Notes: generated from the letters alone by a model not told the origin. A stretch of 64,000 nt of DNA from Trichoplax adhaerens (GCF_000150275.1 NW_002060943.1:10974878-11038877), one strand, 5' to 3'; shown: positions 32,301 to 61,700, numbered from the stretch's first letter. Program-made: numbers and translations.

Positions 32301-35300
32301 GTTATTATTTCTATGTAATACGAGTATAATCTAGTTAGAATTAGATTTGCAATTAAATATATTTGTCGGCCTATGCTATATTGTACTGTATATTTGATAG
32401 CCCATAGCTGCATCGATATATCTAGCAGTTACACGTGTACCTTAATACCCTATCGAATTTTATACGATCTATCAACATCAATACCATAAGCTTTTATAGT
32501 CTAGTCTTCACTAGTTGATATAAAGTGTTGACTATTTTATCTTTCTAGAAAGAATAGATAAAGGAATCAATTTAAACCCTTTCATACTCTTTGCCTCGAT
32601 GATCTTTGACTTTGCCAGTTGCCACCGCATGAGTATAAGCATATGCTAATATATTTGCTGCTCCACCACTGTCAGCAACAACCACTATTGGAACATTCAA
32701 ACGATGCTTGCTTCCACTATATAAATCAGTTACAGCAATGTAGCTGTGAAGTTTGCAGATTGTTTGATATCCTCCACCAACGATTATGTTTAGGCAGGGT
32801 ACAGTGTATTCTAATTTGGATATTCAATGGTCAGTTAATACGTTGATAGAATGGTCAGTATGAACATACAGTAACATAAAAAAGCTTTACTCTGTTAAAA
32901 AAGTGATTTACCATATAGCATTTTGCCAGTTAGCATTGCACATGGTTCTAATCCTACCGGTCGAGATTCTTCCAGAAATAATATGTGTTTAAAAGATTTA
33001 TGTAGGGGTACTGCAATCTCCTTAGCAAGCTTATTATCAGGATAACGAGCTTCTGTCCGATCCTAACAAAAACATAAATTGAAAAATATGCATAGAATAG
33101 ACATTAGTGAGTATTATTCAAAGTATTTACGTATCGGATGCAGTTTGAGCTGCTTATAAGGAAAACTCTATAGTATTTTTAAGTAAGCATAGAATAGATT
33201 TTAGCAAGTGCTGTTCAAAGCTATGGCTTTATAGATCAACCAATAGTTTGAGCTACATCAAGGAATTTTCTGAAGTATTTTTCGACTTTTACAAGTTATG
33301 ATAGCTATAAAGGTCGACACTCTATCGTACAATTTCATCTATAGGGTTGCTTCCATCGCTTTGATTTTGAACAATTGCGTTTTTCCAATACGCATAGCCA
33401 ATTAACATGGTATCGCTATTTCGCTGCATTTCAGTAGCTACTGAGCTTTCCATAACAGCTTCACCAACATAATCCATAATGCCAACATTATCACAATCTA
33501 CAGCTACAACGTATGGATTTATTAAACGTATAATCTTTGCTAAACCGAATCCAAAAATTTTTTTTAATTCAGGGTTAACATTGAATCCGCGAACTCCGCC
33601 AATAATAGTAATAGCCATGTCAGGACGCTGTAAATACCAGTACCAACGGAATAACTTGTAGACTTCATCAATATTTGCATTTGATGTCATACGTATATAC
33701 TATAATCAAGATAAATAATCGAATTACGAAGAGCAATAATTAGATCTTTTTAAACTCTAAAAGTTATCTTAAATATCATACTAAAAATTATGAAATTGGA
33801 AGAACTAGGACTGATATGCTGATTAATACGATACATAAATATTCGTAAATATCAATGAATTACAAAGAATAGCAACTAGACCTTTCTTAACTCTAACGCC
33901 TAAAAATTATCTTAAAGAAATACTAACAATTGTGGAATTGAATGAATTGCGACTGATATACCGATTAATAAGATGTAAAAATATGTGTCAATACTATGCT
34001 CTCTTATAAAAATAGCATGCAATGTCAAATTCTACTTCTATAAACCTTAGAACCACGATGTTCTTGAAAATGTATTTTACCACCCGAAACGTAATATTCG
34101 CGGTGCATAATATTTTTCATGTTATCCTGTTATGATTGGTGAATGAATGAAATAGAGTATTAAAATCTTCAATCTTTTACGTATTTAATTCTTACCAAAA
34201 ATCAATACTTAAAAATAGTTCAAGAACTCGAGTTAGTAATTGAAATGGTATCTAACTAGAGTTCATACAAGTATCACTTATAACCAAATTTAAGTCTTTA
34301 TGGAGATACAATATTTATTAAGCGTAGCTAATAGTAATAGTTGTTTACAGCACATTTACTACTATATGACTTATTGTAAAATAACTGGCTGAATAGCTTC
34401 CTAAAGGATTGTAAGACAAACTTTCTGCAATAATGATAACGCCATTTGTTCAATAGTCTACGATTGACATAATATGCGAAATTTTTGACGGTATGCGATC
34501 ATCTATTTGCAACCACTGACTGAGCAAAACATTTTTACATCATTTTTATTTCACTTGTTGCAATACTATAGCATATAACGGTTCATATGAGGTTTGCGAT
34601 TGGCCTGAATGTTAATAACTAATCATTACAAAGCAAGAAGTGTAATTAGGAATACTATGCCATAGCGTTATAGCTTAGATCAGGGAAACCGACATTACTT
34701 ATCCTTACAAAGCAATTTAAGGAAAATATCATTATAATTATATGATGGAAACTACTAAAACAACTACCAAAATAACTATTTCAAGTCGCGTCAATTCATA
34801 TAAGCAATAAATTCTTGGCTCCAATAAATAAATATGGTTGAAAATGAATTAATCAATAAGAGCATCACAGTATTTAGTAATTTGTACAAGTCAGATCTTT
34901 GAGCTTAAATTACCATGTTATATATACAGATCGAAATTATAATTTGGTTAATTACCTCCAATGCATTCTTTATACTCATTACAGTCACATCATTATTACC
35001 AGCAGCTGCTGATTCTATAGGTGTATGTCCTTCCTAATATGTCATAAAAATTAGCTGTAGATTAAATAAATTGCATCATCTGTTTCATCTACTAGAATTA
35101 ATATTTTTATAATGAGACATGCTTAATCTGTTTATATCATACTCGATAAATTATCCACTCTTAACTATTTCCCAAAGCAAATAATTGTAAAGTTAACTTA
35201 TGGTAACGGATTTAATCTCCAGAATGATGATGTAGTCTATATATTTATAGTATACTGCAATATAACTTTAACGTAATTGCCTTTAGCTTTACAATATTAA

Positions 35301-38300
35301 TAAAGTAAATTAAGTCTAGCACTCTAACTGCAATAAAGACTATTAATCATATCCAAATTCCTTTTAAGAAATTCCTTGAAAAAAGAAAATTAGCTACTGT
35401 ATGGATCCAAACACTGATGAAATCTATTAGTGATTCTATGTTGCACCTTATTAATCACCCAATCGAATCGCGATTGACCTTTGTCACCTTCCATATAGCG
35501 CAACAGTAGTTGTGTACATCTATCCTGACCGTTAATAGCCGCAATATGCAGAGGGGAATGGCCAAGTTTATTTCTCTCATAAAATAAATCTGGTGTCTGT
35601 TAAATGAAGATCAAATATTAGTCGTTACTGAAATGATTCAGTAAAATACTATACGAGTTCAAATAATCGATTGTTATAAACTTTTAATTTGATGTAATAT
35701 AAAAAATAGTGAATGATACAGCTTTGGAATCATATCTAGGAATAGGTCAGGAGTGATCAATTTACCATAAATCCTTCAGTAAGTTCATAATAAACTTTAA
35801 TTGCTTCTAATTGACCTTTCTTAACTGCATAGTGGATTGGATTATCGCCATTGTTCTATTTTGGTATAATAATGTATTCTTTAAAATATATATGTTAAGA
35901 AATTGTAACTGTACTATGCGTAAAGTTAATATCGATAGTTCCAATATTTAAAACTCGAAATATTTACTTTAAATCTGGAATTATAACTTTACTCACATCT
36001 TTGACGTAGGCATCTGCTCCATATTTTGTCAGGAGCTTAATTCCTTCTAAGTTATTATCGGCGAAAGCTTGATGCATAGCAGTTTCATCATTACCACTGA
36101 CATTCTTGTAGGATAATAATAATAATTTTACTACTAAAATAGCCTAATTATATGATATCTTATGAAGTAATTTCTTAATCATTTTGGTAAATGATAGGCC
36201 GGGGTCTTAACGACTGTGCAAGGGAATGTACTGTAGTTATTACTAAAGTAAAACATGCAACACATTTATAAACTATTCTTCCACACTCTGAAAAGGTCTT
36301 AAGTTACATAATGGATTAGGTAAGTGATTCTTTTTCTATTAGAATACAGTAGAAATACGCATAATTTTATACTTACAGGTAGGCTAAGTTTCCCTTCTCT
36401 GGCAACTCGTTCGATAAAGTCTTCGTTATTCTCCTTAGTAGCTTTATAGATGTCGATCATGGTAGTCTAAATGATACAATTAGTAACAGATCACACAATT
36501 TAATCGTTAGCATATGCTAGTATACAAAAAATAAATTGGATGATAAAATAGAAACTGTCCATTCGATATACAACATTCCAAATTTTCTCAATATACGATG
36601 TCATTGCTGAATGGATTTATCATCAGCATACTTGATCATTTCTAGGTAAATGCTGTACTAGTTCTTCAAAATAGCAATAATTACGTTTTCCATTTCCAGG
36701 ACGTCGGCATCAAATTTAAGTAATAATTCAACGCAATTTTCATGATGATTTTCTCTGGCAGCTTGTAGAGGTGTCCGGCCATACTATCACATAGATATCA
36801 TTTATTACACACGATAATATTGCTGGCAGCACTCAATCATAATCACTTTTATCAATATCTCATGGAATTTTAGGAAAATTAAACTATGTAAAACCTCATT
36901 CATGCATCGTATATCCACTTTTTGGTCAATAATCCACTTTAGCATTTCGTAGTGTCCTTTCGTGGCAGAAATGTGGCATAAATTCATGCCAGACTAGAAA
37001 AAATAAAATTTTGCTATACAGTTATTGCTAGAATTATTCATTTATGACTAAAGGAATGGTTTAATATCATGGGTAGCGATTTCAATTTTTCTTCTAGTCA
37101 ATTCGATCTGGCACATATTTACCCAGATTGATTCATTTATGACTAACAGCAACAGTTTATTATCATAGATAGCCATTTCTATCCTATTTAGAGTATAGTA
37201 AAGTGATTCTGTTTATGATTTAATTCGATAACTTACCATAGTCTTGACGTGAATGTCGACATTGTTGCTATTTAGCCACATGAGCATTTCCATGTAGCCT
37301 CCTTCCGCAGCGACACAAGCCATATTATTTCCAGTCTAAGATTGCATACAGCAATGAATCATTTAGCATCAATCAACATTACTCGTACAGTCTAGTATTT
37401 CCAGAAAAATTAGCAATATCATAGATTAGCTCTGTCTTATTCACCGAATCGACCCAGTTAATATCCACTTTCTGCTGTTTTAGCCAAACTAATAATTCCA
37501 TCTTTCCATTGTGCGCTGCATGATAAGCTATGCTTCTCCCAAGCTACCATAGCAGTGGGATAATTAAATCAAGATTTATTGAAACGCCATTCAATGCAAG
37601 TATAATAATTCAAAGAGTTAAAATTTAGACATTATCACAGTTTTTACTACTGCTAAATTTTAGTTAATAGAAAGGAATGATGAATTATAAGCTTCAATAA
37701 CGACAGTCAATAGAAATGTATTTAATAGAATTAATTTAGACATTATCTTATTTTCTACTACCATTAAATTATAGCTAATAGAAAGGATTGATGAATTATT
37801 GGGTGCAATAACGACATCCAATATAAGTGCATTAATTAATAATTAAATTTATTCATTATCGCAGTTTCTACTAATACTAAATTATAGCCAAGAGGAAGGA
37901 TTGATGGGCGATTAGCTACAATTTTTGATATTATTGTTTCTCTTTACCTTATCTTTGCGATGGATATCAACATGTTTATCATTAAGCCAAGAAAGCATTT
38001 CTAGATCATTCCGTTCGGCGCTGTAGTAGCTGATATTATTGCCATGCTGGATATTTTTAAACGACAAGGAAGTAATGAAAGCTAATTCAATATCAGCATA
38101 TTAGAAGAGTGACAGTAGTAGAATGATAAAGTGCACAAGTTAAAAGTGCTGCGGATTTTGACTACCGCTTACAATTCAGATAGCTCATGATTGCATTATA
38201 GTGTCGTACTGCCTCCTACATTCAAAACTAGTTTAGATTCCTGATCTAAAAATACTTTAATTTCTCTGTTCTCTGAGCATATTACAAGTAATAACTATTT

Positions 38301-41300
38301 GTATGTAGCTATAACTTGCAGACAGCAGTATTCTATTCTAAAATTCAATATTTTGACATGAGTTCTAGCCAAAAAGTTATGGTATTGGGTAGTAATGTAT
38401 TCATTTACTACGTAGTATATTTTATGCTTGATGAAGGACTAAAGTAAAATATTTTGTTAGTATAGGACGAAAAAGAATTGATCTTTTCCACGATCCATTC
38501 CACTCTAATGATGAGCTGCACCGACATGTAATCATATAAATCTCTTGTAATATTGCTACTTGAGTTGAGACAGTTTTACTTCTATAGTACAAGGTGATTT
38601 TCGTGCATTTAATACTCATTTAGAGAATTGAGTTTCTATAAAAGTTTATCCACTTTCTATGTCAAACTATCAGCACCATTGCATTAGTTACTCATATAGT
38701 GAATACTTACAGCATCAATATGATATAAATCACCCCGACGTTTATGAAGTTCTTTAAGAATAGCTAAAGAGCCTCGTTTAACTGCATAAAACAGCGGGGT
38801 AGATCCTCCTTCCTATGGAAAGGTAGAAAGTAAATTTATAAATATCAAATCATATTCAAGCCTTACAAACATTATCATAGCTATAAAAAAAAATAGCTAT
38901 AGCATAAATAGAATGTATACGGTACATCCTAATGCTAGATAGACATAGTAGTCAATAGAGTATTTCAAAAAATTATTTAATCGTTTAATAATAAGTAGGA
39001 CTATAAAAATTCTCTTATAATTGAAAGAATGAACATGATATTAATATTCTGGATTTCTATCGCTAATAAAGCGCGGCTCTACGATTCTACTAAACCATGG
39101 ACTACTAGATGTACCAAAAATATGTAAAAAAATTTAGAAGTCTACATCGATACATTAACATTAAAGCTAAAATTAAATAATAGGTATCTAGTTCCGATCT
39201 ATTTTAAATTACAACCGATAAGACTGGCAACTAATTACATATTAATTTCACAATTGTACTAAACCTATAATTTAAGTAATTAAGCGAACGAGAAGATGAA
39301 AGTACCCAATTCCAACTTAGTTTAAAATATAACAGATGAGTCTAGCAACTGACAATATGCAACTTTACAATTGTGCTAAAAGTGGTAGTTTAACAAATAA
39401 AATTATTAATGAAATGAATTTATCTAGTCCGAAATCTAGATTAAATTGTAGTGAGACTAGTGACTAATAATGTATTACTTCACAATTCTACTATACCTGT
39501 ACCTTAATAAATGAAATGAATACAAAGATAAAATTATCTAGTTCCAATCTAGTTTCAACTTTAATCAAAAAAGGCTACGAATATTAATCGTACTTATCAA
39601 GTATGAAACTCTACTATGAATCGAAAATTAAGTCAAATGAACAATCTTGGCCCACTAATCAAGTGCAACTATCAAATTCTAGCATAAGCTCAATAACATA
39701 AAGTGAAACTAACGTCTTGTGCATTGGGATCTGCGTCGTAATTGAGCAAAATTGTAACCGCATTTAAATCTCCATTAAAGACCGCTTTATGAAGGACAGT
39801 CTCCTTTCTCGCTCCCTTAATAATTCAATTAAGAAAAAAGAAATAATTTTTTGGTATTAGTAATTGAGAAGTGATTTTAATTGAATTTCTGTATTCTTGT
39901 TATGGTTAGTTGGCCTTGGATAAGTCTAAAGAATGATCTAATCCTGCAATCGTATTAGCCGATATCACGTATCTTACAGTAATGCTAATATCTACACCAT
40001 TTCGAGACATTTCTTCTAGTAGCTTGATATTTTCTAGCTTGGCCAATTCAAAGATATCGTCAACGGTAACCTAACCAATTACAATCATTATTATATTACA
40101 GAAACTATCATATATACTTTGTTTAACTAGTAGAACATCCTGCATAATCTAAAATAGAAATATATATATATATAGGATAATTTCGCTCTTTACCAACAAC
40201 TTGATAAGTTCAACATGACACGTCTGAAAGGCGTAATCGATGGCCTTTTTGCCTTTCTAGTAGATATAGAATGAAAGAGAAAGAATAACATAAAATACAT
40301 GTACAATATTTATCATTTATCTATTTCACTTTGATAACATATAAACTTACGTTATTTTGTATGTCTAATCTCGCTCCTTTTTCGATCAATAAGCTGGTAC
40401 ATTTATAACTACCGTTCATGCAAGCAAGATGAAGTGGAGTATTACCAACCTATATCCATCAAGATTGTTAGAAATGGGCAATTTTTTTAATTTGTCGAAA
40501 GAATAAATAAAAATCTGATGACATCTGATAGGTATTGCATGAATAACCGATAACAGTTAATAGTTCATTTTAAACTAATATTTAACATCGTTCTCATTAA
40601 ATATTAAAAAGAGCATCGGCGATATTCTTAATTTCTAAGGTTACATTTACTACATACAAGAAAGCAATTTAAAGATGTAAATGGTGCAATAGAGTAGGGA
40701 TGATGTTACGGATTTACAAGCGTCTCTGTATCTAATTATAGGATTTCTTGTATTGTATTCATATCGGTTGTACAGTATTGCAACCTTATCAGAGCTTAAC
40801 GGCACTAGTTCTGTTCCGCACTAGATCAGTAAAGGACTATATTGTACAGTATATAAGGTGGTGAGAAATCAGAATAAAGATAGATATTCACGTGGAAGCT
40901 TAGCTGACGATCTCGCTTCAGTTGACTGAGAGCATACCAAAAAACAGACGCTATCGTTACCGCTAACAGATGGTCTAATAACGTAAAGGGGATTAAATCA
41001 TTTTGCTGAAACGTACGTTATTAGCACTATTTAGGTCAACACCATATTGAATCAAGGTGCCGATCACTTCTTTTCTCCTGTAAGCTGCTGCTGTGTGCAT
41101 TGGTTTCCATTTTGCCTAATGATGATTAAAAAGTACCATGAAAATTTTTATGCAATACTATTGTATAATTTTGAAGTAATAATACTGAATACTTTGGCGT
41201 AAAACTAATACTTTAAGATGATATGAATACAAAGTAAATTATTAATTATCTCGATATATTACATTATTGTCTGCTTCAATTTGACCTCCATGGTCATATA

Positions 41301-44300
41301 GCAAGGTAAAAATTTTGCAATCGCCTTTCATTGCAGCTTGATGCATTAATGTATTTCCATATTCCTAATGGAGTAAGGAACAAGCAAAAGAAAATGTCAA
41401 CCTTTAAAAGCCGATTATGGTTTCAATTTTGAGTGATCATAGCAACATCAGAATAGCTTAAGCTACTAGAAGCACTAAATCGAGCAAAAATTGGCTTACA
41501 TTGGAATAGTTAGGATCGGCACCATACTGCAATGCCCATTGAACTGCCTTATAATTCCCTTCCATGACAGCCAATCTCAATAAAATTTGCTGATAGCAAA
41601 ATAAATTTATCAACATGCTTTAATTCAAAGTCCATCGAAGAAAATTTTAATAGAAATCTACACAATTCTGCAGCATTTAAGTAATCCCAATGATCTGTCA
41701 AGTTAATCTTTCTTTATCGATTCTATCTTACCGGTTGATCTATATCGTTATTGTTTTGAATACTCTTATACAGTTTTTCACTCTGTGACATGCTTTTTTC
41801 CACACCATCCTTCTTGCTAATCTATAATGAAAATAGTTATAAAGAATTACTAATTTAATTTTTATCTACTTACACTCAATAAAGAGATTCATCGGTAAAA
41901 TAAAATAAGAAATTGATCGACTACTTTGTAAGCGTTTATGAACCTATTAGATGGATAAAGTATAATAGCTTCAAATAATAAAAAATGAATTTCTTATATT
42001 AATAGTTTAGCTTTTCACCCACAATTGAAAGTACAGTATTTAGATTTACTCATGTATAGTATTGCAAAAGATATGTTGAAGTAGTTCATGAAATTTAGCG
42101 CAAAGTATTCTCAATTGTAGATCGCCTAATTTAATATAAATCCGTTGAAAGTACGCGTATAAATACGAAAATTTAGCCTAATGTGCTCGTGTGCTCATAC
42201 CAGTTATATAAATTAGATAGTGTAGTAAATTATTACAAAAATTACTCTTATCGAGGCTTTACCTGATCAGTAGCTAAAATGTAATCAGTTTTAATATCAT
42301 CTAAGGTCAAGGCTGATTCCACTTCGGGTTGAAATAAGATTCGGCAGGCATTTCATTTATATTTTAAAGTGAAAACAAATTCAAAGCATGAAATTAGAAA
42401 TAGAAAACACTAACGATATGAAATAAAAGGAGCTAATGCTGAGTGTAACCGTTAGAAATTTTATTGCTAACTATCCATCACTTTAGTAAACTTTAAGAGA
42501 ATTTTTATTTTTACTATCTAATTAACTATTGACCAATTTTGGAGATAATTAAGCAATCGATAACCTAATGTATTTTATATTTTGGACAACAATAATAGAA
42601 ATTTTATATTTTTTTACCAACTAATTCTGGATAGCCTTCTATCTGGATAGCATCAATTTCACAAAATTGATTTACTATGGTGCAATCAAGTTCAAGCATG
42701 ACGGTATCCGTTTGAAATGGAGGAATCTGAAAAATTTAATAGGTGAGTAATCGGTTTTAAGCCATAATACAACAAACAGTCATAAAATCTTTACCACTCT
42801 ATTCAATTAGTAGAAATAAGATAGTCGCTATTCTATCGGCATAGTTCTGTTAAAGCAATCCAGTGCTTTTAATACTGATCTATTAAACACTATAGATTAA
42901 CTCTATTTATCTCTAACCGTTTGCAGAAATGGAGCAAATATTCGAGCAATCTTGTATGATAATGGAAACTTGCTTGGGCTCATTTCCCAAATTGGGATCC
43001 ATTGCTCTTTGTCTTTGTTCCATACACAGATTCCTTTAACAGCCCCACAGTTATAGGTTTCATAGATATTAATTTTCTTGATATAAATGGATTCTTCAAA
43101 TTTCACCTATGGCACAAATTATTGTCTTTGTGAATCAAACTAATTACATATTCTTATCATCAATTATTTCTGCAAAAGAATGCAGAAATAGCATCTTGCT
43201 TTAACGTTAAGGTTAGGATTTATTGAAATGATTCATTATAGCTTTCTAATTTCGTTGTTATACATAAGTAATCATTAGTAACAGTATTAGTAGTATGGTT
43301 ATATCTTTGTAATCAAATTCTGTTCTTCAGGATAAAAAAACAAATTTGCAATATCATTCTGTGGTGGAGACAGTAGTTAGGTACAATGTGATAATTGCGG
43401 TAGGTCAACGTGGTGGCTGCCGTGAGTAAAGTGTGAATACTAACTGTGACTAATAATGCAACTTAAGAAATCTAAGGTAGAAAACGGCAGTATTTGTAGC
43501 AATGGCATTAGAACACATGCAGAGAACATCATTGTAGGATTAGATACAACATATACCATAACAGGTTATAGAATAGCAGATGATTGTAGAAAATAGCGAG
43601 GACTGTAATAACTAAATGTAGTAAGCCATATTTGAACCTAGAGCGAACAGACTGTAGATATGTCTAAATATAAGATCAATACAGCATGTCTATATTTAAG
43701 AGTAAAATATAGTTACAGTATATTCTAAATACACTACACATTCGATATTATACGCTAAAATTATAGCGATGTGTTTTACACGATACCGGTAACTAGCTAA
43801 TCTCGCATATTTGAACGCTCGTTGTCCGTAATGAATTACGTATGTTATGTATTTCAGTTATCTATCTGGTAAGTTATTTATATTAATACTTTTAATAGAT
43901 CAGAAATGGAGGAATTAATGAAATGAAATAAAATTTGAAAAGAATAGCTACTCCAGGCTTAGTTTATAAAGCAAATCTCAATATAAAAGTGCTTGTTGAT
44001 AACTGATGGTTATTATAGATTCGTATATATGATAAACGTTTCTTGGTTTCCATCGCAGAATTTATAACTATACTACTCACCCACAGATTCTACATATACT
44101 ACAACCTACTTCGTAATAGAATATAATCTAAGTAATATAACTGGTATAATATTAATTAAAGCAATTCTTAAATTATTAAAGCATTATAATATTGAGATAT
44201 AAATTCTAATAGCTGACGATCATTTATAAGGTAGAACGGAAATTTATACAACTAGGCGGCTTGCTTCTAGAATCTATGGAAATTGTAGGAATATCTTTAT

Positions 44301-47063
44301 AGAATATTGTCACAAGTTGTACAATCGGTATGATATAGACTAGCGAATTTCTTTCAAGATTTTAAAACCATTTTGATGTTACAATGTAAAGTCTTACGTT
44401 CGATGATCTTGATGATTAATATCTTACTAATCTAGCGTATTACAATGACGTTTAAAGTGTTTTTAATGATACGTATTTTTATACACGAAAGATTCGATCA
44501 CGTCTAGAAGCACTATTGAACGATATGATACTGTATTGATATATTATTGATTGCAAAAATTTGACAAAAAACGATCGTATAACAAATATAAAGTTCGTGG
44601 GATACTGTTTGACATCTAATTAAGAAAAGAAAAGTAATCGCAAATCATGAATCATAGATTCTTACCACAATGCACTGATCATTATCGTATTTGCCCTGAG
44701 CCCAAGCTCCTTCTAAATGACCATACCTAGGATAAACAGTAGGAGGACCAATGACACAGTCGGCATTCCATCTAAAGCATAAAAGATAAATGTCGTTTAT
44801 ATACATGGCAGTAGAGACTTAAGTCTGTTTATTTACTTAGAAAAACAAGTAATGGTTAATATCACCAAACTAGATATGAAATTTTTTTACCATAACATGC
44901 ATATTCTAGTATCTTAATTATTATGACATTCGTAATAATTCATATTCTAAAACTAGACATAAATGTTTTCGTGGTTAAAGATATGTAAAAGTGTCACAAA
45001 CCAGCTTAGTGACAAGGATAACGTAAAATAAATCTCTAAATTACTATAGTCTCCGGGATTCGGTATCCCTTGACTATCTCACAAGAATTTAGACGCCTTT
45101 GATTCTACGTTAAACTCAACTAGACAATTGAGAACTACTTTATTCAACTATCTGACGGGCTTATATACCCTTCTACAGCAGCTAACATTCATGAGTCATC
45201 TTATATAAAATACTTAGGTGAGAACATCTACTAATTAATTTTTCACAGTCGGACTACAATATATCCATTCACAGAATCATTTCAGTGCACATTACAACAC
45301 AGCATTAAATTTACTGTAACATATTTATAATTAGAGTAATTCCTATTGTAAGTAACTAGTTGTAATATATTATCACTATATTATATTCACCAAATTTAGA
45401 TAGCTATTTCTTCACGGTAGTTCGTACCGTGACAAAAAGATATAACAGTTTCGTTAACTGCATGAAACGGAAAATGGCGAAAATCTAACAAAGGCTATAT
45501 AATGTCGCTAGTGTTTGGTAACTGTTTTGCTGTAAACTGATTTCGTCCAAACTGGATATAAAAATTTTTATCATCTACGACATAGACATTCTAATATCTA
45601 TTTTGATTACTGTAATATACGAAATAGTTCATATTTTACTATAGAGATGAGTATTTTTACTGTTATAAATATGTGGAAGATATACGCGTACTATTTACGC
45701 TAGCTGCACGAAATTAGTTACAGGACTTGACCGAAAAAATAACGAAAATCTATTAGAGACTTTATAAGGTTAGAAGTGCTTGCTAATTTTGTAGATTTTC
45801 TTTTGAATTTTGATCATTTCTTAGCTGTAAACTGATTTCGTACAGTCACTGTAACTAAGATATCTTCAAATCTATAATATGCGTCATAGTTACTATCGCC
45901 AAATTAGATGTAAAAAGTTTTGTAACCAAGGACATCAATAATCCTAATTACTAGAATATGCATAATTTAACAGGCGAAGGAGAAACCTCAGCTGGAGGGG
46001 GAGAATTTAATACCAAATCTCATTCTACGTTTAACTACAGTAGGAAATGATGAGAATAGAAATCTAACCTGCAGTTATCCAATTGGCTTGAGTAACTCAT
46101 AACTTCATGAGCCCACAGTTTCTTTCTTGGTGGTGGTGGTGGAGGTTTGTCTTCTTTAACTTCAGTCTTTTCCGATTCAGCATCAGTTTTGTCTGATGCC
46201 TGAATATCTTTTTCTGATTTGGAATCTTCAGTTGCCGAAGGCGATGTTTTTCCTTTATCGGTCGTTGTTTTTGATGCCTGTGATTTTGATACAGTTGTTG
46301 CTGTTTTACTATCGGCCGTAGTTGTTGATATTGTAGGATTAGTAGAAGTAGTTGATGTTGTGGGATTAGTCGAAGTGGTTGGGGTTGTAGGCTTGATCGA
46401 AGTGGTTGGTGTTGTGGACTTAGCGGAAGCTGTTGATGTTGCTGGCTTAGTAGAGGTTGCCGGCGTTGTTGGCTTGCTAGAGGTAGTCGATGTTGTTGGC
46501 TTATTACTGGAGGTAGTCGATGTTGTTGGCTTGGTAGAAGAGTTTGGTGTTGTAGACTTGCTTGTAGGCTTACTTGCTGCAGTCTTCGCGGTGTTTGTTA
46601 CTTTTATAGGCTTACCACTAGGTGTCAGTGTCGTAGGTGCCGTTTTTGAGGTCGGCGTTGTTGGCTTTTTAGCTATAGTAGATCCTGAAGATTTAGGAGG
46701 CTGGTTTGCACCTGGAGTCTTGCTATCAGTAAAGAAATTAGCATAAGCTGGCTTTTCTTCTGTCGGTGGAGAAGACGAATTTTCCTGACTTCGCATCTTC
46801 AAAAATAGCGGAGAGGATGCCAGAGTATTAGGTCTTTCATTCGCCGCGATAGTCTTGCTTGTTTTTTGGGGTAGTGATGTAACAGGTGTTGGATTAGTAT
46901 GATTAGCGGATGTTACATTAGAATTTGATCCATTATTGGATGCGTCCGATATCGATGGCATCAATATTTGGGGGCCAGATATGTTGGGAGCACTGTTTCG
47001 TGGAATTAAAGGCTTTGTAGGCTTATTAGAACCCCTCGTATAGTCCGCCGATGGGCGAATCAT
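26392..47063 (-). CDS. Ankyrin-repeat TRPM-like cation channel, paralog A (low-complexity N-terminus, FBXL4-N-like domain, ~18 ANK, SLOG/MHR, 6TM, TRP box)
   Basis: Phase-compatible exon chain from ATG 47063: 47063-46069, 44771-44666, 43106-42918, 42726-42618, 42321-42263, 41821-41732, 18 phase-0 ankyrin-type exons 41589-34956, 34126-34046 (GGKIHF...SK), 33699-33331 (YIRMTS...[15 protein letters not shown]), then MHR exons ([19 protein letters not shown]; [12 protein letters not shown]; DDRLDFV; FIWSILARR; WGNATCLQI), S2 [16 protein letters not shown], pore [24 protein letters not shown] box WKFQRY, and stop TGA at 26394-26392. Confidence 0.85.
28740..29110. repeat. Intronic degenerate direct repeat (~135 bp x2; ~28740-28875 and ~28975-29110)
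   Basis: gcagacttattaaa.gggt.taatcat ... tataaata.tc.gca ... agtaatcctat.ctaatatactt occurs twice. Confidence 0.75.
31739..32552. repeat. Intronic degenerate tandem duplication (~370-440 bp x2)
   Basis: Collinear shared anchors in 31739-32090 and 32112-32552: taacctaaaaata, ttgctactttt, aatacgagtataat, ttagattt.caatta, ttgatag.cc.tagctgcat, agcttttata.tctagtctt..ctagtt. Confidence 0.8.
33746..34015. repeat. Intronic degenerate tandem repeat (~140 bp x2)
   Basis: ttatcttaaa...atactaa.aatt.tg.aattg...gactgatat.c.gattaata.gat occurs twice. Confidence 0.7.
37620..37922. repeat. Intronic tandem repeat (~112 bp x ~2.7)
   Basis: aattta..cattatc...ttt.tacta....taaatt.tag..aa.ag.aagga.tgatg occurs three times. 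Confidence 0.8.
39165..39560. repeat. Intronic tandem repeat (~118 bp x ~3.3)
   Basis: Recurrent tatctagttcc.atct / agact.gcaact.a / tt.acaatt.t.cta units. Confidence 0.7.
42618..46120 (-). other. FBXL4-N-terminal-like (discoidin/galactose-binding-like beta-sandwich) domain exons of paralog A
   Basis: Spliced translation: [145 protein letters not shown]. The motifs SSQ / GPPxVYPxYG / ETYxxGAV / ARxFxP / E(I/L)DAxxxxG match my recollection of the FBXL4 N-terminal domain; no search was run. Confidence 0.7.
45470..45860. repeat. Intronic degenerate direct repeat
   Basis: aaaat..cgaaaatcta ... gctgtaaactgatttcgt occurs at ~45470-45550 and ~45735-45845. Confidence 0.55.
46069..47063 (-). other. 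First coding exon of paralog A: Pro/Ser/Thr/Lys-rich low-complexity region ending in [21 protein letters not shown]
   Basis: 342-aa ORF with no signal peptide. Donor AG|GTTAGA at 46069/46068 is phase-compatible with the exon at 44771. Confidence 0.75.
46300..46580 (-). repeat. Coding ~27-bp degenerate minisatellite (KPTTSTTSS-type 9-aa repeats)
   Basis: Recurrent gttgttggcttagtagaggtagtcgat-like units on the + strand, giving KPTT/NPTT repeats in the translation. Confidence 0.8.
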
Positions 47064-50000
47064 GTTGTCTTTATCGATTTAAATCCTTAATTAATCTATC
47101 AATAACAAAATGAGAGGAATGAATTCAACTCAATACTTAATAAATGACACTACCAGTAATAAAGGTAATTTAATCGATTTCAATATGGTGTTTTAATACG
47201 AGATAACAAATAAAATTATTTCAGTTTTTATTGACTATTTTAATATAATAATTAATCCGCTTTACTTTTGATACAAAAAGCACCTAAAAAATCCTATTTT
47301 ATAAATCGATCACGTTATGATGGTGGTGACTAGCTTTCCATGATACTTTACTTGTTATACGAAGTATTATAAGACTAAAGACATAACATCTATTGAAATA
47401 CAATGCCTAACTTATATGATGCCTTTAGATTTAATCTCAGAACATGGGGGAAAATATTTCTGTCGATCATAAAAGAACCGAATATAGCTATCCTCTTCGC
47501 TTAAATTGTCATTAATTCCAATTTTATCGCGCTGACAATAAAGCAATTTAGCCTAGTTCCTAGTTTTCTGTCTCGATCTTACAACCAGTAAATTCTTAAT
47601 ATTGATTATTCATAAAAGAAACCTTCGGTACATTCTACTCTTACCCACATTTAAGATTAGGCATCTTTGTAACTACTGCTGAAGAAATCCCAGCGTGATA
47701 GATAGAGCCTGCTAGGGTGCTGTCTATAAATAATAACACTATAACATCTCAAGTGATTTCTTACGCAAATAAATTCACTGTATATGAGATGACTTAATAG
47801 TCCTACAGGGAGAAAACTAACGCAATCTAAGCAAGAATGAATCATGTCGGAAACGCCCAATACTTAATAGATAGAAACGAATAAATGATAGTTATTCGAG
47901 AAAAAGTGTAGGTGAAAAATCGTATTTACTGGAACGATAGAATAACAATGATAAATAAAACTATAGGTTAGCAATAATGCTGTGGAAGGAAATAACTAAT
48001 TAAGATTAAATTTACTTGATAAAGTATAAATAGAAGTAGAGAAAGAATCGAACAGATAAAACATTAAAAGAGAAAATTAGCTTTCCGTGATAAAAAAACG
48101 TATTTGTACGATTCATTTCACGATAATCATAACTAAGCAGGTTGTATTGCTTGATTCATATCGTGTTTTATTAGCCAAAATAACATAAAACATTTCTATT
48201 TAATCTTTCAAGATGAGCAGCACCATCTTACCTGAAGTTAAACTTGATCGATGTCTAAATATTACCCACTATGAAATGCTGACTGATCCTTTTTGTAATA
48301 ATAGTCTATCATACTATTCTTTACTAGATAGCTATTGATTGAGAATAAATTCAGACGCCATTCAATGGCTTATATTAATTAAACTATTCTAATGGAGTAA
48401 TTTAGAATGGTACCTTTCCAATCTTTTACAAATGAAAAATGCCTTAGTCGTATTGCTATTTACAAAATTGCATAATGGAAGGAAAGTATAATAACTACGC
48501 CTGCATTTTAAATAGTTGATTATAATAACTGATTTACAGATAAAGTTATACAAATATTATCACAATAGGTAGCTGCATTAAGGAATAATTTACATAATAT
48601 CTCCACAAATGGAAATTGTTATTATCATTTCAAGGTTATAGTCATGCTAGTTGGATTGTAGCTATTGATCTTGATTATCTACAAACAAATGCTAATGGGA
48701 AAATAATCTCGGCCTAATCAATATTGAACGTATTAAGATCTTACTTATGGCCAAGTGAGAGTGTTCTAAAATTGATTCCAAATGCTTCCAGTCGATGTCG
48801 TGGCTATCGTTCTCATACTAGCAATTAAGGTTAAGACTGATTGAAATGCTATCAACCAATATAGTTAATTTTTCTTCTACTATACTTATTAATGAGATAT
48901 GATAGCTATTGTAATGCCACTGGATAAATTATAATGTATTATAAATATCGAACAATGACTCAAACTGGAGAAATATTTAGAATTAATTAAAACTTGAATA
49001 GTATGTTACTGCTTCACAGACATTCATTATAGGAAATTACTAAAGAAGGTTGTAGTTGTTGCCTATTAATATTATATCATCTCTGATGCTATTTTAGACA
49101 GACAGGGTTTATACTGAGCCAGACACATAGGGTTAATGTTATAGATATTTATCTAGACATTATTCGGATTCAGTTTTGGTACATGTTACATTTCTAGGAA
49201 CTCTAAATTGGTACATAATGTTAACTTTCATCAGTATATATGCTGCAATTATGATGAAACTAACGGGTAATTTTGATTATAAAATACAGTAGCAGTTATG
49301 TTCCATTGTCATCGAATACAGTGCGAACTTGAAGACTTTCTGGCTTCTCTAAGTGTTTCTTTAATAATTATGTGCTATATACCTGTGATATATACCAATC
49401 ACGAGATTCCAAATTTTAGAAAAATAAGGGCTTTATTGAATCTTATACAAAGATTGACTACACACAGCTCTACTCTAGCCGAATACTACTACTAAAGACT
49501 TTTAGAACGAACTAACAGAATAATCTAAAGTTGCATGCTTTTATACTTTTCGTAGCATTCGCAGCTACAATCCGCATGGCAATCTTTTACCTTATATTAC
49601 ACATAGTTAAATTATTCTTAGAAAGACTATTCTACTGCGGACCATCATTAATCCAATATGGATACGACTACAGTACTTACGTAGACATTATTCACACCAG
49701 CCAAAGTACAATGAATTAACCATATCCTAATATATGATTTACAGTTCTATTTTTACCTATAGCCTTATTAGTAACTCAACAGCTTACTGTATATAGTCAT
49801 ATGTACTCTAGCATAGAGTCTATACCACTACAGTCTATAGTTATAGCTACCAGATATCTCTTAGGATGAATATCTACCGTACATTATACTAAACGTGGCT
49901 AATAGTCTACAATCACAATACTAGTTACATTACAATACCGTAGAAAGATACAATTTGCAGTTAAAATACGATCATTAATGTAGCAATTTCGAGAATCTAG

Positions 50001-52777: not shown

Positions 52778-55700
52778 TTAAAAGATTTTCCCTCTATCGC
52801 GTGCCTCGAATTTCCGCCAATAAGTAAATGCCATCCAGTTTTCCCATGCTTCCAATTTTGATATATTAATATTTTTTCTTGATATTTGGATAGTAGCTGA
52901 AAAAGAAGAATCAAATTTTTATGATATGACTACGTAAGCAGAATTACGACGCAATAGTAAATGAGAAGGTAAGAGTAATAGGTGAACTTACTTGTATTAT
53001 CATCAAATTGTTCCTTATGGCGGTGGCTATATTTAGCCCAAGCATATTTTAATAGTCGATAAAAATGTACTATTATTATGAATGGTGCTGGCAAAGCAGG
53101 TTTTTTTACAAATTCTGTGATCAAAGTATATCGTTGTGATTTCCAGATGATATCGGAATTCTCTTGAACTTTAACATAAGTATCACTGAAAAGGAGATAA
53201 TCAGAAAGAGTATCAATACAGTAAAAGTATTAAGTAAATGAATTCGTTTTTCAGTATTAATCAATATAATATCTGCACTTTAGTAATTAAGAAATGTAGA
53301 TTAATTAGCAAATGATAATTTCAATGAGGTTTTATCCTTATAAAATATTTTAGATATTTTGTACTGAAATTAATGTTATAAAAACAATACTAAAATTATT
53401 GCACAAGAAAATCAATCGAATAAACTAATGCAACTGCGGTAACTTTGGTCTATAGTTTTATCTTCTCTGAGCAATAAGGAATTTTTATAATCCATACATT
53501 AATGCATCATATTACTGTAAATATACGGAATATACCACAATAAATCTACGCAATGATTCAGCTAACTACAGTAGTTATGTGCTAAATAGGTAATACAGCG
53601 ATAGTATCTGGTGTAGAACTGTCTATCTTAATTAATAAAGTAAATGTTGCTAGTACGGCGAAATAGCTCACTTGTACACTACCACATACTATATTTTAAT
53701 AATTCAGAACTTTGAGTTGTCGGATTTCGAAGCTAGGATTAAAATTCGTGCGCTACATCATACTAGTATTTATGGACATTCTGAATAATTTTGCAGTCGG
53801 TTCCCCTCTTTTAAACTAATTTAATAAATATTTACTAATCTAACTTAATTTTCTAAATAATACTCAAATGTTTCAAAAACTTACTTAAACACAGCGATGA
53901 GTAAGTTGAGAAGTAAGATATTAGTTACCAATACGTAAAAGCCTAGCAACCATGGCATAATCCATGCATTGTGAACACATTTTTCATTTTTGCCAATTAA
54001 AGTTGTATTAGGGCAGTTTCCATTCGTGACTAAATCAAGAAAGAATTCGCCCAACATCTGGTAGTATGGTTTGTATAAAACTTTGCCGACAAGTGTAATA
54101 TCCCATGGTGAGTTTGGATAGAGTAAAGCTTGAGAAATTACTCCATAAGATACCATAAATATGGATAGAATTATTAGAAACCTGGCTAAGTCGATGGTCT
54201 AAGAGTAAGGGTATTATACAAAACTGATTAGAACTTGAACAATTGAGTGTGACTAATTTAGTCTCATCACTTATCGTAATCAATTTATCAGCTAATTAGC
54301 ATTAAGCTTATGTAGTTTAAGTTAAGAAATTCGCTAAGTATTTTGTAGGTGCAGTATTTACCATCCTTCCGATCATTACCAAAAACGGACCGAATGAACG
54401 ACTAACTGCTAAAGCTCTCAAAATCAATAAAGCGAATGTAATAAAAGATAAGCAATACAAAATTCGAGCAATTTCAAAGTTTGTTGTACTAAATCTTAAA
54501 CCCAGTCCAGTGTAGAACAATATGAATGCAACGATAATAGTAATATTGATAACTTGAGATATATAAGATTTGAATTTTAACAGGTTGCTTTCAGCATCCG
54601 TGGTAATCAGCTGTAAAAGATGAATCGAATTTTCAAAAAAGTTAGAATGAATGTCCGATAATTATAATATAACATACTCACAATCATAGAAATATTTGTT
54701 TTGACATCTGTGCTGTATACGTGTGATTTAGCATTTGTCTCATTACACTATGTTAGATAATTGCGTTACCTGTCGTATTTCATCACATACTAATGTCGAC
54801 ACCCATATCACCGTTACAATTTCTGTACCAGCCATGTATGACGTATAGAGAGTCGACATTAGCACATTCGCAAAGAGTACCAAAAAACTGATATCGGATA
54901 GCTATTTCAAATGGTAGTAAAACAATATCAGTAATAATATACTGTAATTAATTACAATAGGCTATTCTAGTAATGCCATCTTTACATCGATATTCGAATC
55001 ATAAAATTGATGGTACCACAAATATATCATTTTAGCATTGATATAAAAGAATTAAAAAATATCACAGCATAACTATCACTGCTAAATTTATTTATAGTAA
55101 AAAATAATCTTACTGTATGAATAAAGAATTTAGCTCTCGCAGAATTCCAAATTTTTATTAGCTTGATTAGTATTAGAAATAGAAAAGCCAGAGTTGAATA
55201 GGAACTTCGACTTTCGTCATCAGAATCATGTTCCTTTTCGGATTCCTGCGGACTGATTATCACGGCTAATTCATCATTGTTGCCATCATAATTAATTGGT
55301 TCTACAGCTTTAAATCTTTGTAAAACCGTTGGCTGTAATAGTTATAATTTAGGAGATCGTTAAGATAACGGTTTTTAAAATCATCTGGCTGACTTAATAA
55401 GCATTTATTAAAGTTAGATAACAGCAGAGCGATCGAAACTAAGACTTAAGATATTAATATCAATAATTAACTGCACGGGAATAATACTGTAGCGAATAAA
55501 ATGTGATAGTCCCAGAATATAAACTCTATTTACGTGAGTTTGCAAATTGCAATTGTAAAAGTATTAAATTTATAGTAATTTACTACTTTCTTAAAGAATT
55601 AGGAAGTAATTAATAGGCCATAATATTATAACAGTTTACCATACCTGATCAGTCCACAAATTATTTAAAATTTGCTGATAACTTGGCTCCGCTGTAAAAT

Positions 55701-58700
55701 GTTGATTGACAGTGGTAGAAGATAATTGTACTAGGTTGCAACTTCCCCATTCTGGTATCTCCATTCGTAGTAAAATAAATGTGCCTTCTTTATCATCTGC
55801 ATAGCAAGCTCTTAATAACTGAATAGCATGATTATGGAATTCCCTGCAAAACATTATAAAGATAATAGTAAGACAATAAATATCATAAGGTTATCATACA
55901 CCTTCCGATAAGTAGATACTGCGCTACATTCAACAGATCGGTAAAAAATATTTCAATCAACAAATAACTCTTTCATATAAGTTATCCTGACAAAAATACA
56001 AGTATAAGTTAAATGTCTTAACATTTAATAATAATGTTGGACATGCAGTTACTATCGTATCGATATAATACTCAACTCCGCTTTTTGCTCCATTTCCTTG
56101 CTTTTCTCTGTTTCTCCCATTTCATTAGCTACTTCTGATAATTTGAGTAGTAAATGTCTAGCTATCATCGCTGCTGCAATTGGGTACTTAACCTTCTTTA
56201 ATAAATATGCAGCAACAGCCAGTCGGTTGCACAGCACTGCCCATAAAAAGTAGTCATGTGTAGGCCATTGTAAGTCTTTTGCAATTAAGTATGTGCTAGA
56301 AAGTAGGCTAACAGAATCTTCTAGGTCATCTGGTTGATTATTATTTTCGATTGGCGTCAACTCTATTTGAACTAATTCCTGAGTTTCATCAATATTTTCA
56401 CTCAATTGACTGACGGATCGAGCATCTTCCACTATAATGGGGACAGAGCTTATTTCTTTACTTGAAGTTTCAAAATTAGCATAAGGATTCCAAAATCCAA
56501 ATCCTATCAACTCTTCAATGACTTCTCCAATCTCACTTAGTTTGTCGATTAAAATATTCTAAAGTAACCACATAATAATACTTATCTAGTAAGCATACAT
56601 GAAAATTAAAGCAAGATTTTAATGGAGTCAGTTATAAAATTTCACTCCGCATACCTTACTCTGAACCTTGACTGCTATACCCATAGAATTCCTAAATAAA
56701 CGTTTCAGCACTAAATTACTCCGGAACTTTTATTCTATTATATTTCAAGTAGAAGATAGCAAAATTTAGTAAAAAATATCTCACTCTATGCAAATAAGAA
56801 AGCTTTAGTAAAGAGTTGAAATCTTTAAAATTTTCTATCTATTACATATAGCAATTATGTAGCATGCAATAATTAAGTTACAGTGCCAGTTATCATTCGT
56901 TTAAAAATTAAGTATACAGTATACACTTCAAGGAAAATCTGCTCTATACGTGTAACTACGGTATATTGATAACCGCTAATCTGCTACAGAGAATTTCACT
57001 GAAAATAAAACAAAAATAAACTTTTATTTGTATTAAATTACCATATGAGCATATAAATTCTTTAAAATAGGTGTCGTAAGGATTTGTTCAACAGTCAATG
57101 AACTGTTTAGTATGTCTGTTATAAAGTCCACTCGGTCGTCGATTAGAGCTTCTTTGATAGCCGATTCTAAGTCATTTTGTTCTATATTCTATTGGATTAC
57201 AGTAATAGGATGTTAAAAAATCTAGCACTACTTGTAGGTAAAACTTGAAACAAAATATCATTGATTTTTATTAAAATTTGTTTAATTACACATTTTAATT
57301 AATCTAACCACTTTATCCTATCGATATCAAACTATTTTAGTAATACTAAAAGACAATTTCTTAACCTGATTGCTTATCAACCCGAGAATCTGATCCTTTG
57401 CTAAGTATAACTTATTAAATTTTGATGCAATTTCCACTTGCTGGGTATCTTCAATGGGGTCCAATCCATCTGAAAAAAATTATACAATTAGCTCACTATA
57501 ACGGTAATTATCAATATGTAAATTTTAGTTACGATTTAAATCTTGACTTAAGAAACGATTTCAATAATTTGCGGTAGTAAAAATTCCTTTGAAATGAGTA
57601 AAGTTAGCAATAAGTGTTTATTTACCCTTCATTAAAGCTTGAATCATTGCAACATCCATTGAGCCTTCATTAATGTCGTAAACAAGCAGCTGAAAGTAAT
57701 ATCGTGGAGGATTATTATAATGTAATAAAATATATCTTCTAATTACGTTCAAATCAGCCTGCTTAGTAGGCTGAAGTTCTACATCAATCAATATCATGTA
57801 ATGTGAATTCAATTATTTAATGTGCAGCAAATATATTTTAAAATAAATTCTATTACAGTAGTACTTACAACATCGCGATAAACCATCAAATCGCTAATTT
57901 TACGATAACATTCGGTAATTTCCGTAAAATTATAATGATCAGAAAAATTGAAAGCCTTCCTTAAGAAGGCCTTAATTAGTCTTTCACTATTGCGGTCGAT
58001 GGTGTAATTGTTGACCCTGAATTAAATTGTAATAATAATTATCGTTATGAATTCTTAGATATCATTTTAGTGGCTGTTTAAGTTGTGAGCTAATTGTAAT
58101 AAATCATTATTCTCATATTGCATTAAATCATGTCCTCCGTTCCATTATGATCCACTATTACAAGTCGTAAATTAGCTTTCGTTTAAACAGCTGATTCCAT
58201 ATCTTCTATAAATTTTTATAGCTACTATTGTAAAGGACAAGGAATATCCACTATGATCATTTTATAGTTCATGAATACTGGTCACGTTATATTGCAGCTA
58301 GACAGAGATTCAACTCAAAATCGTTTAAATTATCTAACTAAAAAAAGCAAATGTCATTCTACTATGATTGAAGTATGATTAGCTTTCTTTTATAAATAAC
58401 TCTATGACTGCATGGCGTTGCTCGCAAATAGTTGGTTTCCTGAGCTTAAGCTTAGATTGCGATCATGACCAGGGTCTATGTGTGACTACTATTGTTTATA
58501 TTTATCTTCTTCATTACGTATATGTTATATCTAATATTACTGTAGACGCATTGGGACATACTCTTTGCCTCGATGATCTTTAACCGTTTCATCTACGACA
58601 CAATTTTCATACGCTAAGACCAGTAAATCCGCCGCACCACCGCTATCTTTAACCAAAACGATAGGAAAATTGAGTCGATGTACATCCTTACTGTAAATTT

Positions 58701-61700
58701 TGGTAGTATAAATTGCATGATGAAGTTTTAAAATGGTATTGTAACCGCCTCCAAATACGATATGAATAGAAGGAATATCGCAAACTGCAAATAAAAATAA
58801 AAAAATACTCTATTAAGTATAAATAATTAATTGGCTAGAACATTACGAAAATATTAAGGTTATTCAACTGCCTTGATTGATTATTGTGAGATTTAAACTA
58901 ATTGGATAGCTACTGTGCTACTATATGATAGACTAAATACAGTTACTATAAAACTTAACTTTTAAGTACTCTAACTTTAGATAATCAATAAGTCATGATT
59001 TCACCCATTATTGCAGTAATTGTTGCAATAATATTACATTCTACTTTGAAAAGCAAGACTCACCATATAAATATTCTCCCATTAGAAGTGCACGGACGTC
59101 TCCTTTACCCTTTTCATAAGCTTCATTAGTGCTTTGCCTATCATTCTTCTTATTCTGTGAGTCATCTTCAACAATTGTGGTGCTAACACTTATCACAGTG
59201 TTTCGTTCAAGAGCATCATCATCTATATTTACTGTTTTAGTGCGAGCATTTACAATACTTCCTGGTCGATGGGGAGCGCTCACAATACTTCCTGGTTGGG
59301 CAGAAGCGTGTACATTCTGTCTTGATCGATTACGAGTACCAGCAAGAGCACCTTGTCGAGAGAGAGTACGTGATCGAGCAGGAGTATCTTGGATACTTTC
59401 TGCTACAGTTTGGTCATCTACGATACTTGGTGCTTTAGCCAGGCCATCAACCCGGTTTGCTGCACGAGTAGGACCACTAATAGTACTTGTTCCAATACCA
59501 CTGCGACCAGGACCATCGACCATATTGTCTTTTCGTAATTGGGTAGGACCTCCAATAGTACTTCCTGCTCTAATACGGCTACGATCATCAAAAGCACTTG
59601 CTGCTGAAGTAGGATCAATATTGAGGCCATCTTCATTATCATTCTCGATTTCTTCAACATTCTCACCATTATCAATAAATACAAAGTAATTAAATATAGG
59701 ACTAAGTTTAATTGGAAAATCAGGTTCCTCATATGTCATCAAGATTTCTTCTTTACTAGTTTCCTGTAAATATTAATGATGACATGTACTTTAAATTTGC
59801 TACTCTATAAAGTAATTAATTAAGTAGTTATTATTGACATTGTCTTAAGGGTGAGTATTAAGTCAATAATTTATCATATGAGTCATAATATCAGTTGGCG
59901 TACTAAGCTTACATTATAATGCGTGAAATTATACTAGAGATAAAAATTCTCGTATCGCTCGATTTTTAAGAGCTATATTATCCGTGTAGTAAGCGGTATA
60001 CATACATTCTATACGGTGCATATGTAATCAATCGTTAAAAATTTTAGACCTTATCATCAGTGACGGATCTTGGCTTCCAATTGGCATATCCTATTATCAT
60101 ACTTTGATCAGAGTCAAATTCTGCACTCCCTTCCATCGATTCGCCAATAAATTGTATAAATCCACGGTCATCGTTATCATTTGTCATTAATAATGCATTC
60201 ATTGAACCAACCGCTTTCGAAATGGCAAATCCAAAAATTTTCTTCAGTTCAGGATTAATACTATCTTTTTCTTGAATACCGCCTTCTAGTGCAATTACCA
60301 AACCGGGTGATGACATACCCCAATACCAGCGCAATAATATCCTTAAGTCAACAGCTGGAGTGTTTGGTTTAATTTTCATAAACTGTTAAGCATCAAGTCA
60401 AGAATATTATGTATTTAGTCAGCCCTCATCAACTCAATTATCGATGATAACCAATGAAATAGTAATATTCTATTCATTGTTGAGTTCATCAGAAAGATAA
60501 TGTATGAATATTGACATGCTATATCCTCTTGTTCTATCTCGTTCTCTTTAAGTTGTACAGCGCTTGATAAAGCGCAATTTTGTGCAGATATCCAGTTACA
60601 TCCTCATTATCTTATATTACCTTTGATGTTTTGACTTTTCCATTTTCTAAGGTAAACTTAATTTCACCTCCTCCAATGAATCCCCTTCGGCGTATTATGT
60701 GAGGTAGTTGTTTCTAATTAGTAATAAAATGAATTACATATCTATCAGTATAGGATAAATCTAAAAGCACATAAATGATAAGGAAATAGTGCATATATTT
60801 AAGCTGCACGAGTAAATAAGTTTTGAAAATCATTTTGTCTATACATCATTAATATAATTCTTACATTCATAAATCGTACTATTACATCCACAATTTCCCT
60901 ACTATCATTCTGGCGAGCAATATCAAGAGGAGTCTCTAGCTTCTATACTCAGATAAAAAGCCGTCATTCATCGATAAAGTAGCAATCCTAACCACGATAG
61001 ACTAACTGGCATAATACAAAGAGCGCTAATAACACTGGTTATAACAAAGTTCATAATAGGGTATCTAAACTATTTATAGAGTCGTTTTAAATAGATATTA
61101 CTTGATTTTTCCATATTTGTCTCATTACTATTTAATCATAAATTATAGTACAAACCTATCTTTCTGCTATCATTAAACTGTAATATTTTTAATAATACAA
61201 AGTAGTAGCGATCATCTGTTTTATCACTCGTTGTAATGAAACTTACACGAATCTCTAGTCATTAATTTACTAAATATTTCATGTATTGCAGCCACGAAAT
61301 AACTGCTTTAGTAGGAACTCGAAATAGTATTATAAAATACTAAATATTTCAATTATTATAATCTATTATCTTGTTTATGCTTAGATTAGCAGTATAAAGA
61401 AAATTACACTGAGCGGTAAAGTAAGATATAAGAATGAGTTCTGGACAGTATATACGATTCCAATGAGCCATCAATTGTAAATTTTATCATAAATTAGCGT
61501 GTAAGATTTACATTGTTAAAGATTCCAATATTTCGATCACCATTTGATTTAATTTCGTAGAAATTCATCAGTAATTCCATACATTCAACTCGTTCATTCA
61601 AGGCAGCGATGTGCAATAATGATTGTCCTTCAGGCAACTTTTCATAAAACGCTTTTAAAATCTATATTAGAGGTATACAGGTTCATATGAAAAATAGTAG

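Follow-up and report, generated by a model that had tools for sequence, protein, structure and literature searches.

A 64,000-nucleotide stretch of the Trichoplax adhaerens genome (NW_002060943.1, positions 10974878-11038877; hereafter the window, with positions counted from its first letter) was analyzed within an assembly of 105.6 Mb, 1414 contigs, and approximately 31% GC content. Two tandem genes on the minus strand, at 33325-41589 and 52780-64000, both join a long ankyrin array to the SLOG/MHR and pore exons of a TRPM-type ion channel. Upstream of the first ankyrin repeat of the former lie four exons that encode a complete domain of the type found at the N-terminus of FBXL4, and which probably belong to the same gene as the channel. 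This window copy is referred to as gene A, and the tandem copy, whose domain lies just past the window end, as paralog B. The exons of gene A up to ankyrin repeat 1 are listed in Table 1.

Table 1. Exons of gene A from the N-terminal head to ankyrin repeat 1 (window positions; HMM, 142-position hidden Markov model of the domain family).
Feature	Position	Strand	Description
Exon 1, N-terminal part	46116-47063	-	about 315 codons, Ser/Thr/Pro-rich, low-complexity, beginning at the frame's first ATG
Exon 1 tail, first strand of the domain	46069-46115	-	HMM positions 3-16
Exon 2, domain	44666-44771	-	AG/GT borders, 3' phase 0, HMM positions 19-52
Exon 3, domain, 63 codons	42918-43106	-	AG/GT borders, 3' phase 0, HMM positions 54-111
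Exon 4, last strands of the domain	42618-42726	-	AG/GT borders, phase 1 donor, HMM positions 114-142
Exon 5, putative linker	42263-42321	-	GT-AG borders, fitting phase, 3' phase 0
Exon 6, putative linker	41732-41821	-	GT-AG borders, phase 0
Exon 7, ankyrin repeat 1	41500-41589	-	Pfam Ank_4 (E = 1.3e-4), also Ank_3 and Ank; 3' phase 0

A two-sequence profile of exon 3 was searched against 1.84 billion representative proteins, and the family HMM was built from the matches. When single exons were tested one by one against this model, the exon 1 tail (7 bits), exon 2 (31.8 bits), exon 3 (63 bits), and exon 4 (25 bits) of gene A were collinear and together filled 135 of the 142 match columns; the exons of the paralog mapped alike. 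The residues that are nearly invariant across the family (G26, W41, Y68, E69, G74, F106, D136, A137, and G142, numbered as in P0004:7-148, a Mytilus homolog) are all kept in both copies. The two domains share the motifs IGPP, GAWAQ, IYETY, xGxV, R(I/L)F, and (E/D)IDAI and the final G, and show 45% protein identity (63% for exon 2). All four domain exons are stop-free, with intact splice sites, compatible phases, and positive codon scores. They encode a complete FBXL4-N-type domain, and the agreement is far beyond chance. The initial annotation had assembled the domain from the same four exons, and the AG/GT borders, the matching phases, and the end-to-end collinear fit to the family HMM bear out that assembly; the four motifs it had quoted (GPPxVYPxYG, ETYxxGAV, ARxFxP, and EIDAIxxxG) were all located in the gene A exons, the third as ARIFAP in exon 3 and the fourth as EIDAIQIEG in exon 4. 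That these exons are chance open frames, or decaying remnants without a present function, is effectively refuted by the four stop-free exons with their intact splice sites and full collinear coverage of the profile, by the positive codon scores, and by two copies that retain every nearly invariant residue although they are now only 45% identical.

The exon 3 profile gave 234 matches at E ≤ 1e-3, of which 20 were at E ≤ 1e-10. Among them are the FBXL4-like proteins P0116, P0047, and P0081 (E values from 4e-8 to 9e-6), in which the match precedes the Pfam F-box; P0116 and P0047 carry the name F-box/LRR-repeat protein 4-like. The other matches include mollusc proteins with tandem units, fusions to BTB domains, the protist protein P0051, in which two units are followed by ankyrin repeats, surface proteins of Bacteroidota, and fusions to a class C G-protein-coupled receptor and to Sushi repeats. 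The mollusc tandem-unit relatives are named "Pappalysin-1 SD scarf domain-containing" in UniProt, and the family label PF25900 (PAPPA, "Pappalysin-1 SD scarf domain, C-terminal") comes from precomputed annotation on the relatives; a Pfam library without the PF25900 model gave no family on the domain exons. In a sequence search of the PDB, exon 3 on its own matched nothing beyond chance likenesses to enteropeptidase, and the family profile reached factor VIII C2 at E values of about 0.7 to 0.9 and no PAPP-A or FBXL4 chain.

The likeness to the FBXL4 N-terminal domain, which the initial annotation had put forward, proved to be one of homology, as indicated by the HMMER matches ahead of the F-box and by a TM score of 0.94 to the FBXL4 cluster. 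By sequence identity, however, the domain is nearer to the mollusc and BTB-linked PF25900 units than to FBXL4, which corrects the earlier emphasis: its closest relative is P0004:7-148 (47% identity), and the mollusc and BTB-linked units show 41 to 47% over 135 columns, compared with 29 to 36% over match columns for the FBXL4-like proteins. Gene A is not an FBXL4 ortholog, given that ankyrin repeats and TRPM domains follow the domain, and not an F-box and leucine-rich repeats (LRRs). Membership in the classical F5/8 type C family (PF00754) was likewise rejected, as the window exons gave no match at the gathering threshold of 28.2 bits; close relatives score 17 to 27 bits on this model, under the threshold. 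By the proxy model described below, the fold class is shared with F5/8 type C domains; the family is different. Within its widespread family, the domain itself is unremarkable.

The contiguous homolog P0004:7-148 was used as a proxy for the fold and modeled using AlphaFold2 with a 57-row family alignment (pLDDT 98.4, pTM 0.92). A Foldseek search of the PDB with this model returned PAPP-A (7ufg, TM 0.78) and PAPP-A2 (8sl1) as the best matches, within a range of TM 0.77 to 0.79, followed by the muskelin discoidin domain, neuropilin b1, XRCC1-N, CBM32, IFT25, and APC10. In the ESM Atlas, the model matched the FBXL4 cluster, which consists of predicted models, at TM 0.94 and PF25900 clusters at TM 0.93. 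The fold of the FBXL4 N-terminal domain has been published as discoidin or galactose-binding-like (PMC10308361). The discoidin-like fold claimed in the initial annotation is supported by the top Foldseek matches of the homolog model, and by this close proxy the domain of gene A is predicted to be a discoidin or galactose-binding-like β-sandwich.

Downstream of the domain, ankyrin-like open-frame fragments run by eye from exon 7 to about 34900. Exon fragments between 33699 and 26937 match LSDAT_euk (SLOG; E = 1e-15 and 3e-8) and TRPM2-like sequences (E = 1.5e-8 and 2.8e-7), with a weak match to Ion_trans; the TRPM SLOG region starts at 33699, and the ankyrin array stands before it. On these matches, the channel is of TRPM type with an added ankyrin array, a correction to the initial annotation, which had written of a TRP channel and an ankyrin stack. 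Among the TRP families, TRPM is the one said to have no ankyrin array (PMC7306681).

When the whole genome was scanned in six frames, exons 2 and 3 turned up exactly once more, 3 to 4 kb past the window end and upstream of the second tandem ankyrin-TRPM paralog. Both domain copies lie approximately 1 kb upstream of ankyrin repeat 1 of their respective paralogs and in the same orientation, and the exon phases are identical in gene A and paralog B, exons 4 to 7 included; exon 7 shows 47% identity between the two. No third copy and no FBXL4-type N-terminal domain elsewhere was found in the family-profile scan, in which exons were matched singly and only the best candidates were scored, and for that reason the scan is not read as evidence that FBXL4 is absent. 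The lack of a second-site FBXL4 N-terminal domain could mean that FBXL4 is diverged, exon-fragmented, or absent in this animal.

Better evidence for a link between domain and channel than that in gene A comes from the linker of paralog B. Its interval between the domain and ankyrin repeat 1 (about 1.1 kb) contains stop-free runs of 133 and 77 codons, the former reached in 0/2000 shuffles and the latter in 0.85% of them. The 133-codon run starts three codons ahead of an acceptor AG, and the first 37 codons of the candidate exon 5 are free of ATG and score +11.6 bits, which was matched by 0/26 null windows. Because the coding frame opens at the acceptor and is ATG-free for 37 codons, this exon would need an upstream coding exon, and the phase 1 donor of exon 4 fits it. 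The paralog B linker thus favors one gene. In gene A, the interval from the domain to the ankyrin repeats is approximately 1 kb, with candidate introns of 142 to 441 base pairs (bp). Exons 5 and 6 have weakly positive codon scores of +3.7 and +1.7 bits, which were reached by 2.6% and 11% of null windows, respectively. Exon 5 alone would join exons 4 and 7 in frame, such that skipping exon 6 keeps the frame; a direct splice from exon 4 to exon 7 shifts the frame into a stop. The proposal that the domain forms the N-terminus of the channel is accordingly retained in part: the shared orientation, the introns of less than 450 bp, and the coding linkers of paralog B speak for it, but the linker exons offered by the initial annotation carry no weight. 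On this evidence from the DNA, domain and channel are quite probably encoded by a single transcript and constitute a true fusion.

The best explanation overall, which we hold to be reasonably likely, is one minus-strand gene whose protein would consist, in order, of a Ser/Thr/Pro-rich disordered head, a single complete domain of the PF25900 type, a short and fast-evolving linker, an ankyrin-repeat array, and a channel of TRPM type that comprises SLOG/MHR regions and a six-helix pore, the function of the domain as a recognition head being suggested by analogy. No hydrophobic signal or membrane segment was found in the exon 1 head. Since the sequence ahead of the channel has neither a signal peptide nor a membrane segment, and since the N-termini of TRP channels are cytosolic, the domain would be cytosolic and form the distal tip of the ankyrin stack. 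The discoidin domain of FBXL4 is predicted to lie against its LRR solenoid (PMC10308361), and in an AlphaFold2 model PPTC7 occupies a pocket between the two (PMC11316107). By analogy with FBXL4, the domain of gene A may be a protein- or ligand-recognition module that caps the first ankyrin repeats or docks on them and whose occupancy would be relayed through the ankyrin/SLOG assembly to the gate. A recognition head that modulates gating or localization, perhaps docked at the start of the ankyrin array, seems the most economical reading by this analogy; the anchor for tethered gating suggested in the initial annotation would be one version of it, and a speculative one. A more specific proposal, in which the PF25900 domain joins the first ankyrin repeats in a composite receptor site in the cytosol, comparable to the FBXL4 discoidin-LRR pocket, and occupancy by a protein or metabolite gates the TRPM pore, must be considered quite improbable.

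Several results weigh against the single gene with a recognition head. The linker exons 42321-42263 and 41821-41732 named in the initial annotation do exist, with GT-AG borders and in frame into ankyrin repeat 1, but they are no better than chance. When AG..GT-bounded, stop-free exon chains were enumerated between exon 4 and exon 7 and compared with 30 shuffles, 15 chains of one exon and 193 of two exons were in frame in the gene A interval, and in-frame chains were obtained in 30/30 shuffles; splice-phase logic was therefore dropped as support for the gene A linkers. A tblastn search with the linker exons of the paralog gave nothing above noise in the linker region of gene A, and the linkers are thus not conserved. 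If the intron after exon 4 is retained, a stop follows after 4 codons in gene A and after 21 in paralog B, and a stand-alone domain protein is therefore possible. Both paralogs have an in-frame ATG 14 to 19 codons before the end of exon 6, a possible start of a channel without the domain; in-frame ATGs occur in exon 6 of gene A and in exons 5 and 6 of paralog B. The common layout of the paralogs counts as one observation because they are tandem duplicates. A word search with exon 1 (331 residues) over 8000 candidates found no matching public protein of 182 to 579 residues, and an exact look-up of the exon 1 product, in a collection from which records of this genome may be absent, also gave none. 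The fold was modeled on a homolog of 47% identity, and we know of no ligand or partner of PF25900 domains beyond the modeled contact between FBXL4 and PPTC7.

The chance-level linkers of gene A, the stops on read-through of the exon 4 donor, and the in-frame ATGs would all fit two separate genes that were duplicated together as a pair: one for a soluble protein of about 480 residues (the Ser/Thr/Pro-rich head and one PF25900 domain) that ends after exon 4, and an independent ankyrin-TRPM gene whose channel would start at the ATG in exon 6 or in exon 5 of the paralog. Many members of the family are also small proteins of this domain alone. However, an interval of about 1 kb with such short candidate introns leaves little room for a terminator and a promoter, exon 5 of paralog B is open and codon-biased for 37 codons ahead of its first ATG with a frame that opens at an acceptor, and exons 4 to 7 follow an identical phase pattern in the paralogs despite a protein identity of about 45%. 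Separate genes are considered unlikely, and less likely than a single one. The same internal ATGs, together with the weak and variable linkers, would fit two isoforms from one locus, in which an upstream promoter gives a long form with the domain, and an internal promoter or exon skipping gives a channel without it, so that the domain would be an optional regulatory head; the in-frame bridging of exon 4 to exon 7 by exon 5 of gene A agrees with such use. This arrangement, to which we assign a small likelihood, refines the single-gene explanation and is not a true alternative to it.

Comparison with known systems shows where the proposed protein would differ. FBXL4 has a homologous cytosolic domain with the same fold (on the homolog model), placed N-terminal to a solenoid repeat array; unlike gene A, it has an insertion after the first third of the domain, and an F-box and LRRs follow, whereas ankyrin repeats and a channel follow in gene A. 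The scarf region of PAPP-A and PAPP-A2 shares the PF25900 label and provides the best solved-structure matches, but PAPP-A is a secreted metalloprotease in which the domain is extracellular, and its chains gave no match at the sequence level. The closest sequences are those of the mollusc and rotifer tandem PF25900 proteins (for example, P0004 and P0151 from Mytilus and P0152 from Crassostrea), whose BTB fusions are cytosolic; these have two to four tandem units, are often fused to BTB, and lack a channel, whereas gene A has a single unit. Some of these proteins (P0002 and P0009) start with a hydrophobic segment that by eye resembles a signal peptide and may be secreted.

The order of PF25900 units, a linker of about 100 residues, and ankyrin repeats is also found in the "ankyrin" protein P0178 of the apusozoan Thecamonas trahens and its metatranscriptome relative P0051, and a word search with residues 270-414 of P0051 for long domain-bearing proteins returned only P0051 itself and P0178. 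This order was probably acquired independently because these proteins belong to a distant eukaryote lineage. They contain no TRP channel, and their C-terminal part is Cys-rich and, by eye, possibly zinc-finger or E3-ligase-like. Such a part would give a third link between PF25900 domains and proteins of the ubiquitin-ligase type, after the F-box and BTB fusions.

Cytosolic accessory modules are coupled to the gate in several TRP channels, including NOMPC/TRPN, TRPA1, TRPM2 with its NUDT9-H domain, and TRPM6/7 with their kinase, and the ankyrin stack may have a transmitting role. NOMPC/TRPN and TRPA1 are ankyrin channels without a globular β-sandwich at the tip, and the TRPM accessory domains (NUDT9-H and α-kinase) are C-terminal, unlike the N-terminal domain of gene A. 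No TRP, Ion_trans, or SLOG domain was found among the long profile matches examined. The words "discoidin" and "FBXL4" are absent from a 2026 survey of domain gains and losses in TRPM (PMC13143021). The statement in the initial annotation that no TRP channel is known to carry this domain consequently holds for the matches examined and for the TRPM literature consulted (PMC7306681, PMC13143021).

What would be new is the architecture alone, provided that the fusion is confirmed. In that case, a TRPM pore would have taken on an ankyrin stack tipped by a β-sandwich otherwise present on ubiquitin-ligase adaptors (FBXL4 and BTB proteins) and on PAPP-A; the PF25900 domain, for which the sole role proposed so far is to help FBXL4 hold PPTC7, would acquire an electrical read-out; and a further case of sensor modules shuffled onto channels would be found in an animal that lacks neurons. 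For this animal, pharmacology alone has led to the proposal that TRPM-type channels may be thermosensors (PMC10498350). If gating through the composite site were true, gene A would be the first case of a TRP channel headed by a discoidin-type sensor and would give the PF25900 family its first physiological read-out. If the genes are separate, what is left is ordinary: a new single-domain protein in a family that is widespread.

Exon 1 extends from its ATG at 47063 to a phase 2 donor, with the GT directly after 46069, and forms a 342-codon open frame in DNA of 31% GC, with a codon log-likelihood of +63 bits. It contains a 27-nucleotide (9-codon) tandem repeat in 8.6 copies at 46320-46553, gave no Pfam family, and has a head that is mucin-like in composition. 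A plus-strand open frame of 175 codons (46219-46746) overlaps this repeat-rich stretch and is tentatively taken for an antisense artefact. No Rfam families or tRNAs were found in 41000-47500.

The putative linker exon 5 of paralog B (G000:C1414:11041200-11041471, minus strand) starts with about 37 residues that are charged and, by eye, heptad-like, a possible coiled coil. This charged start has no counterpart in gene A, and the paralogs may differ in head oligomerization or partner binding. No counterpart of the Ser/Thr/Pro-rich exon 1 was found in the 9 kb read upstream of the paralog. The upstream side of paralog B is bounded by an LRR gene on the opposite strand (G000:C1414:11047602-11048318, plus strand), and the 5' end of paralog B should therefore lie within approximately 4.5 kb of its domain exons.

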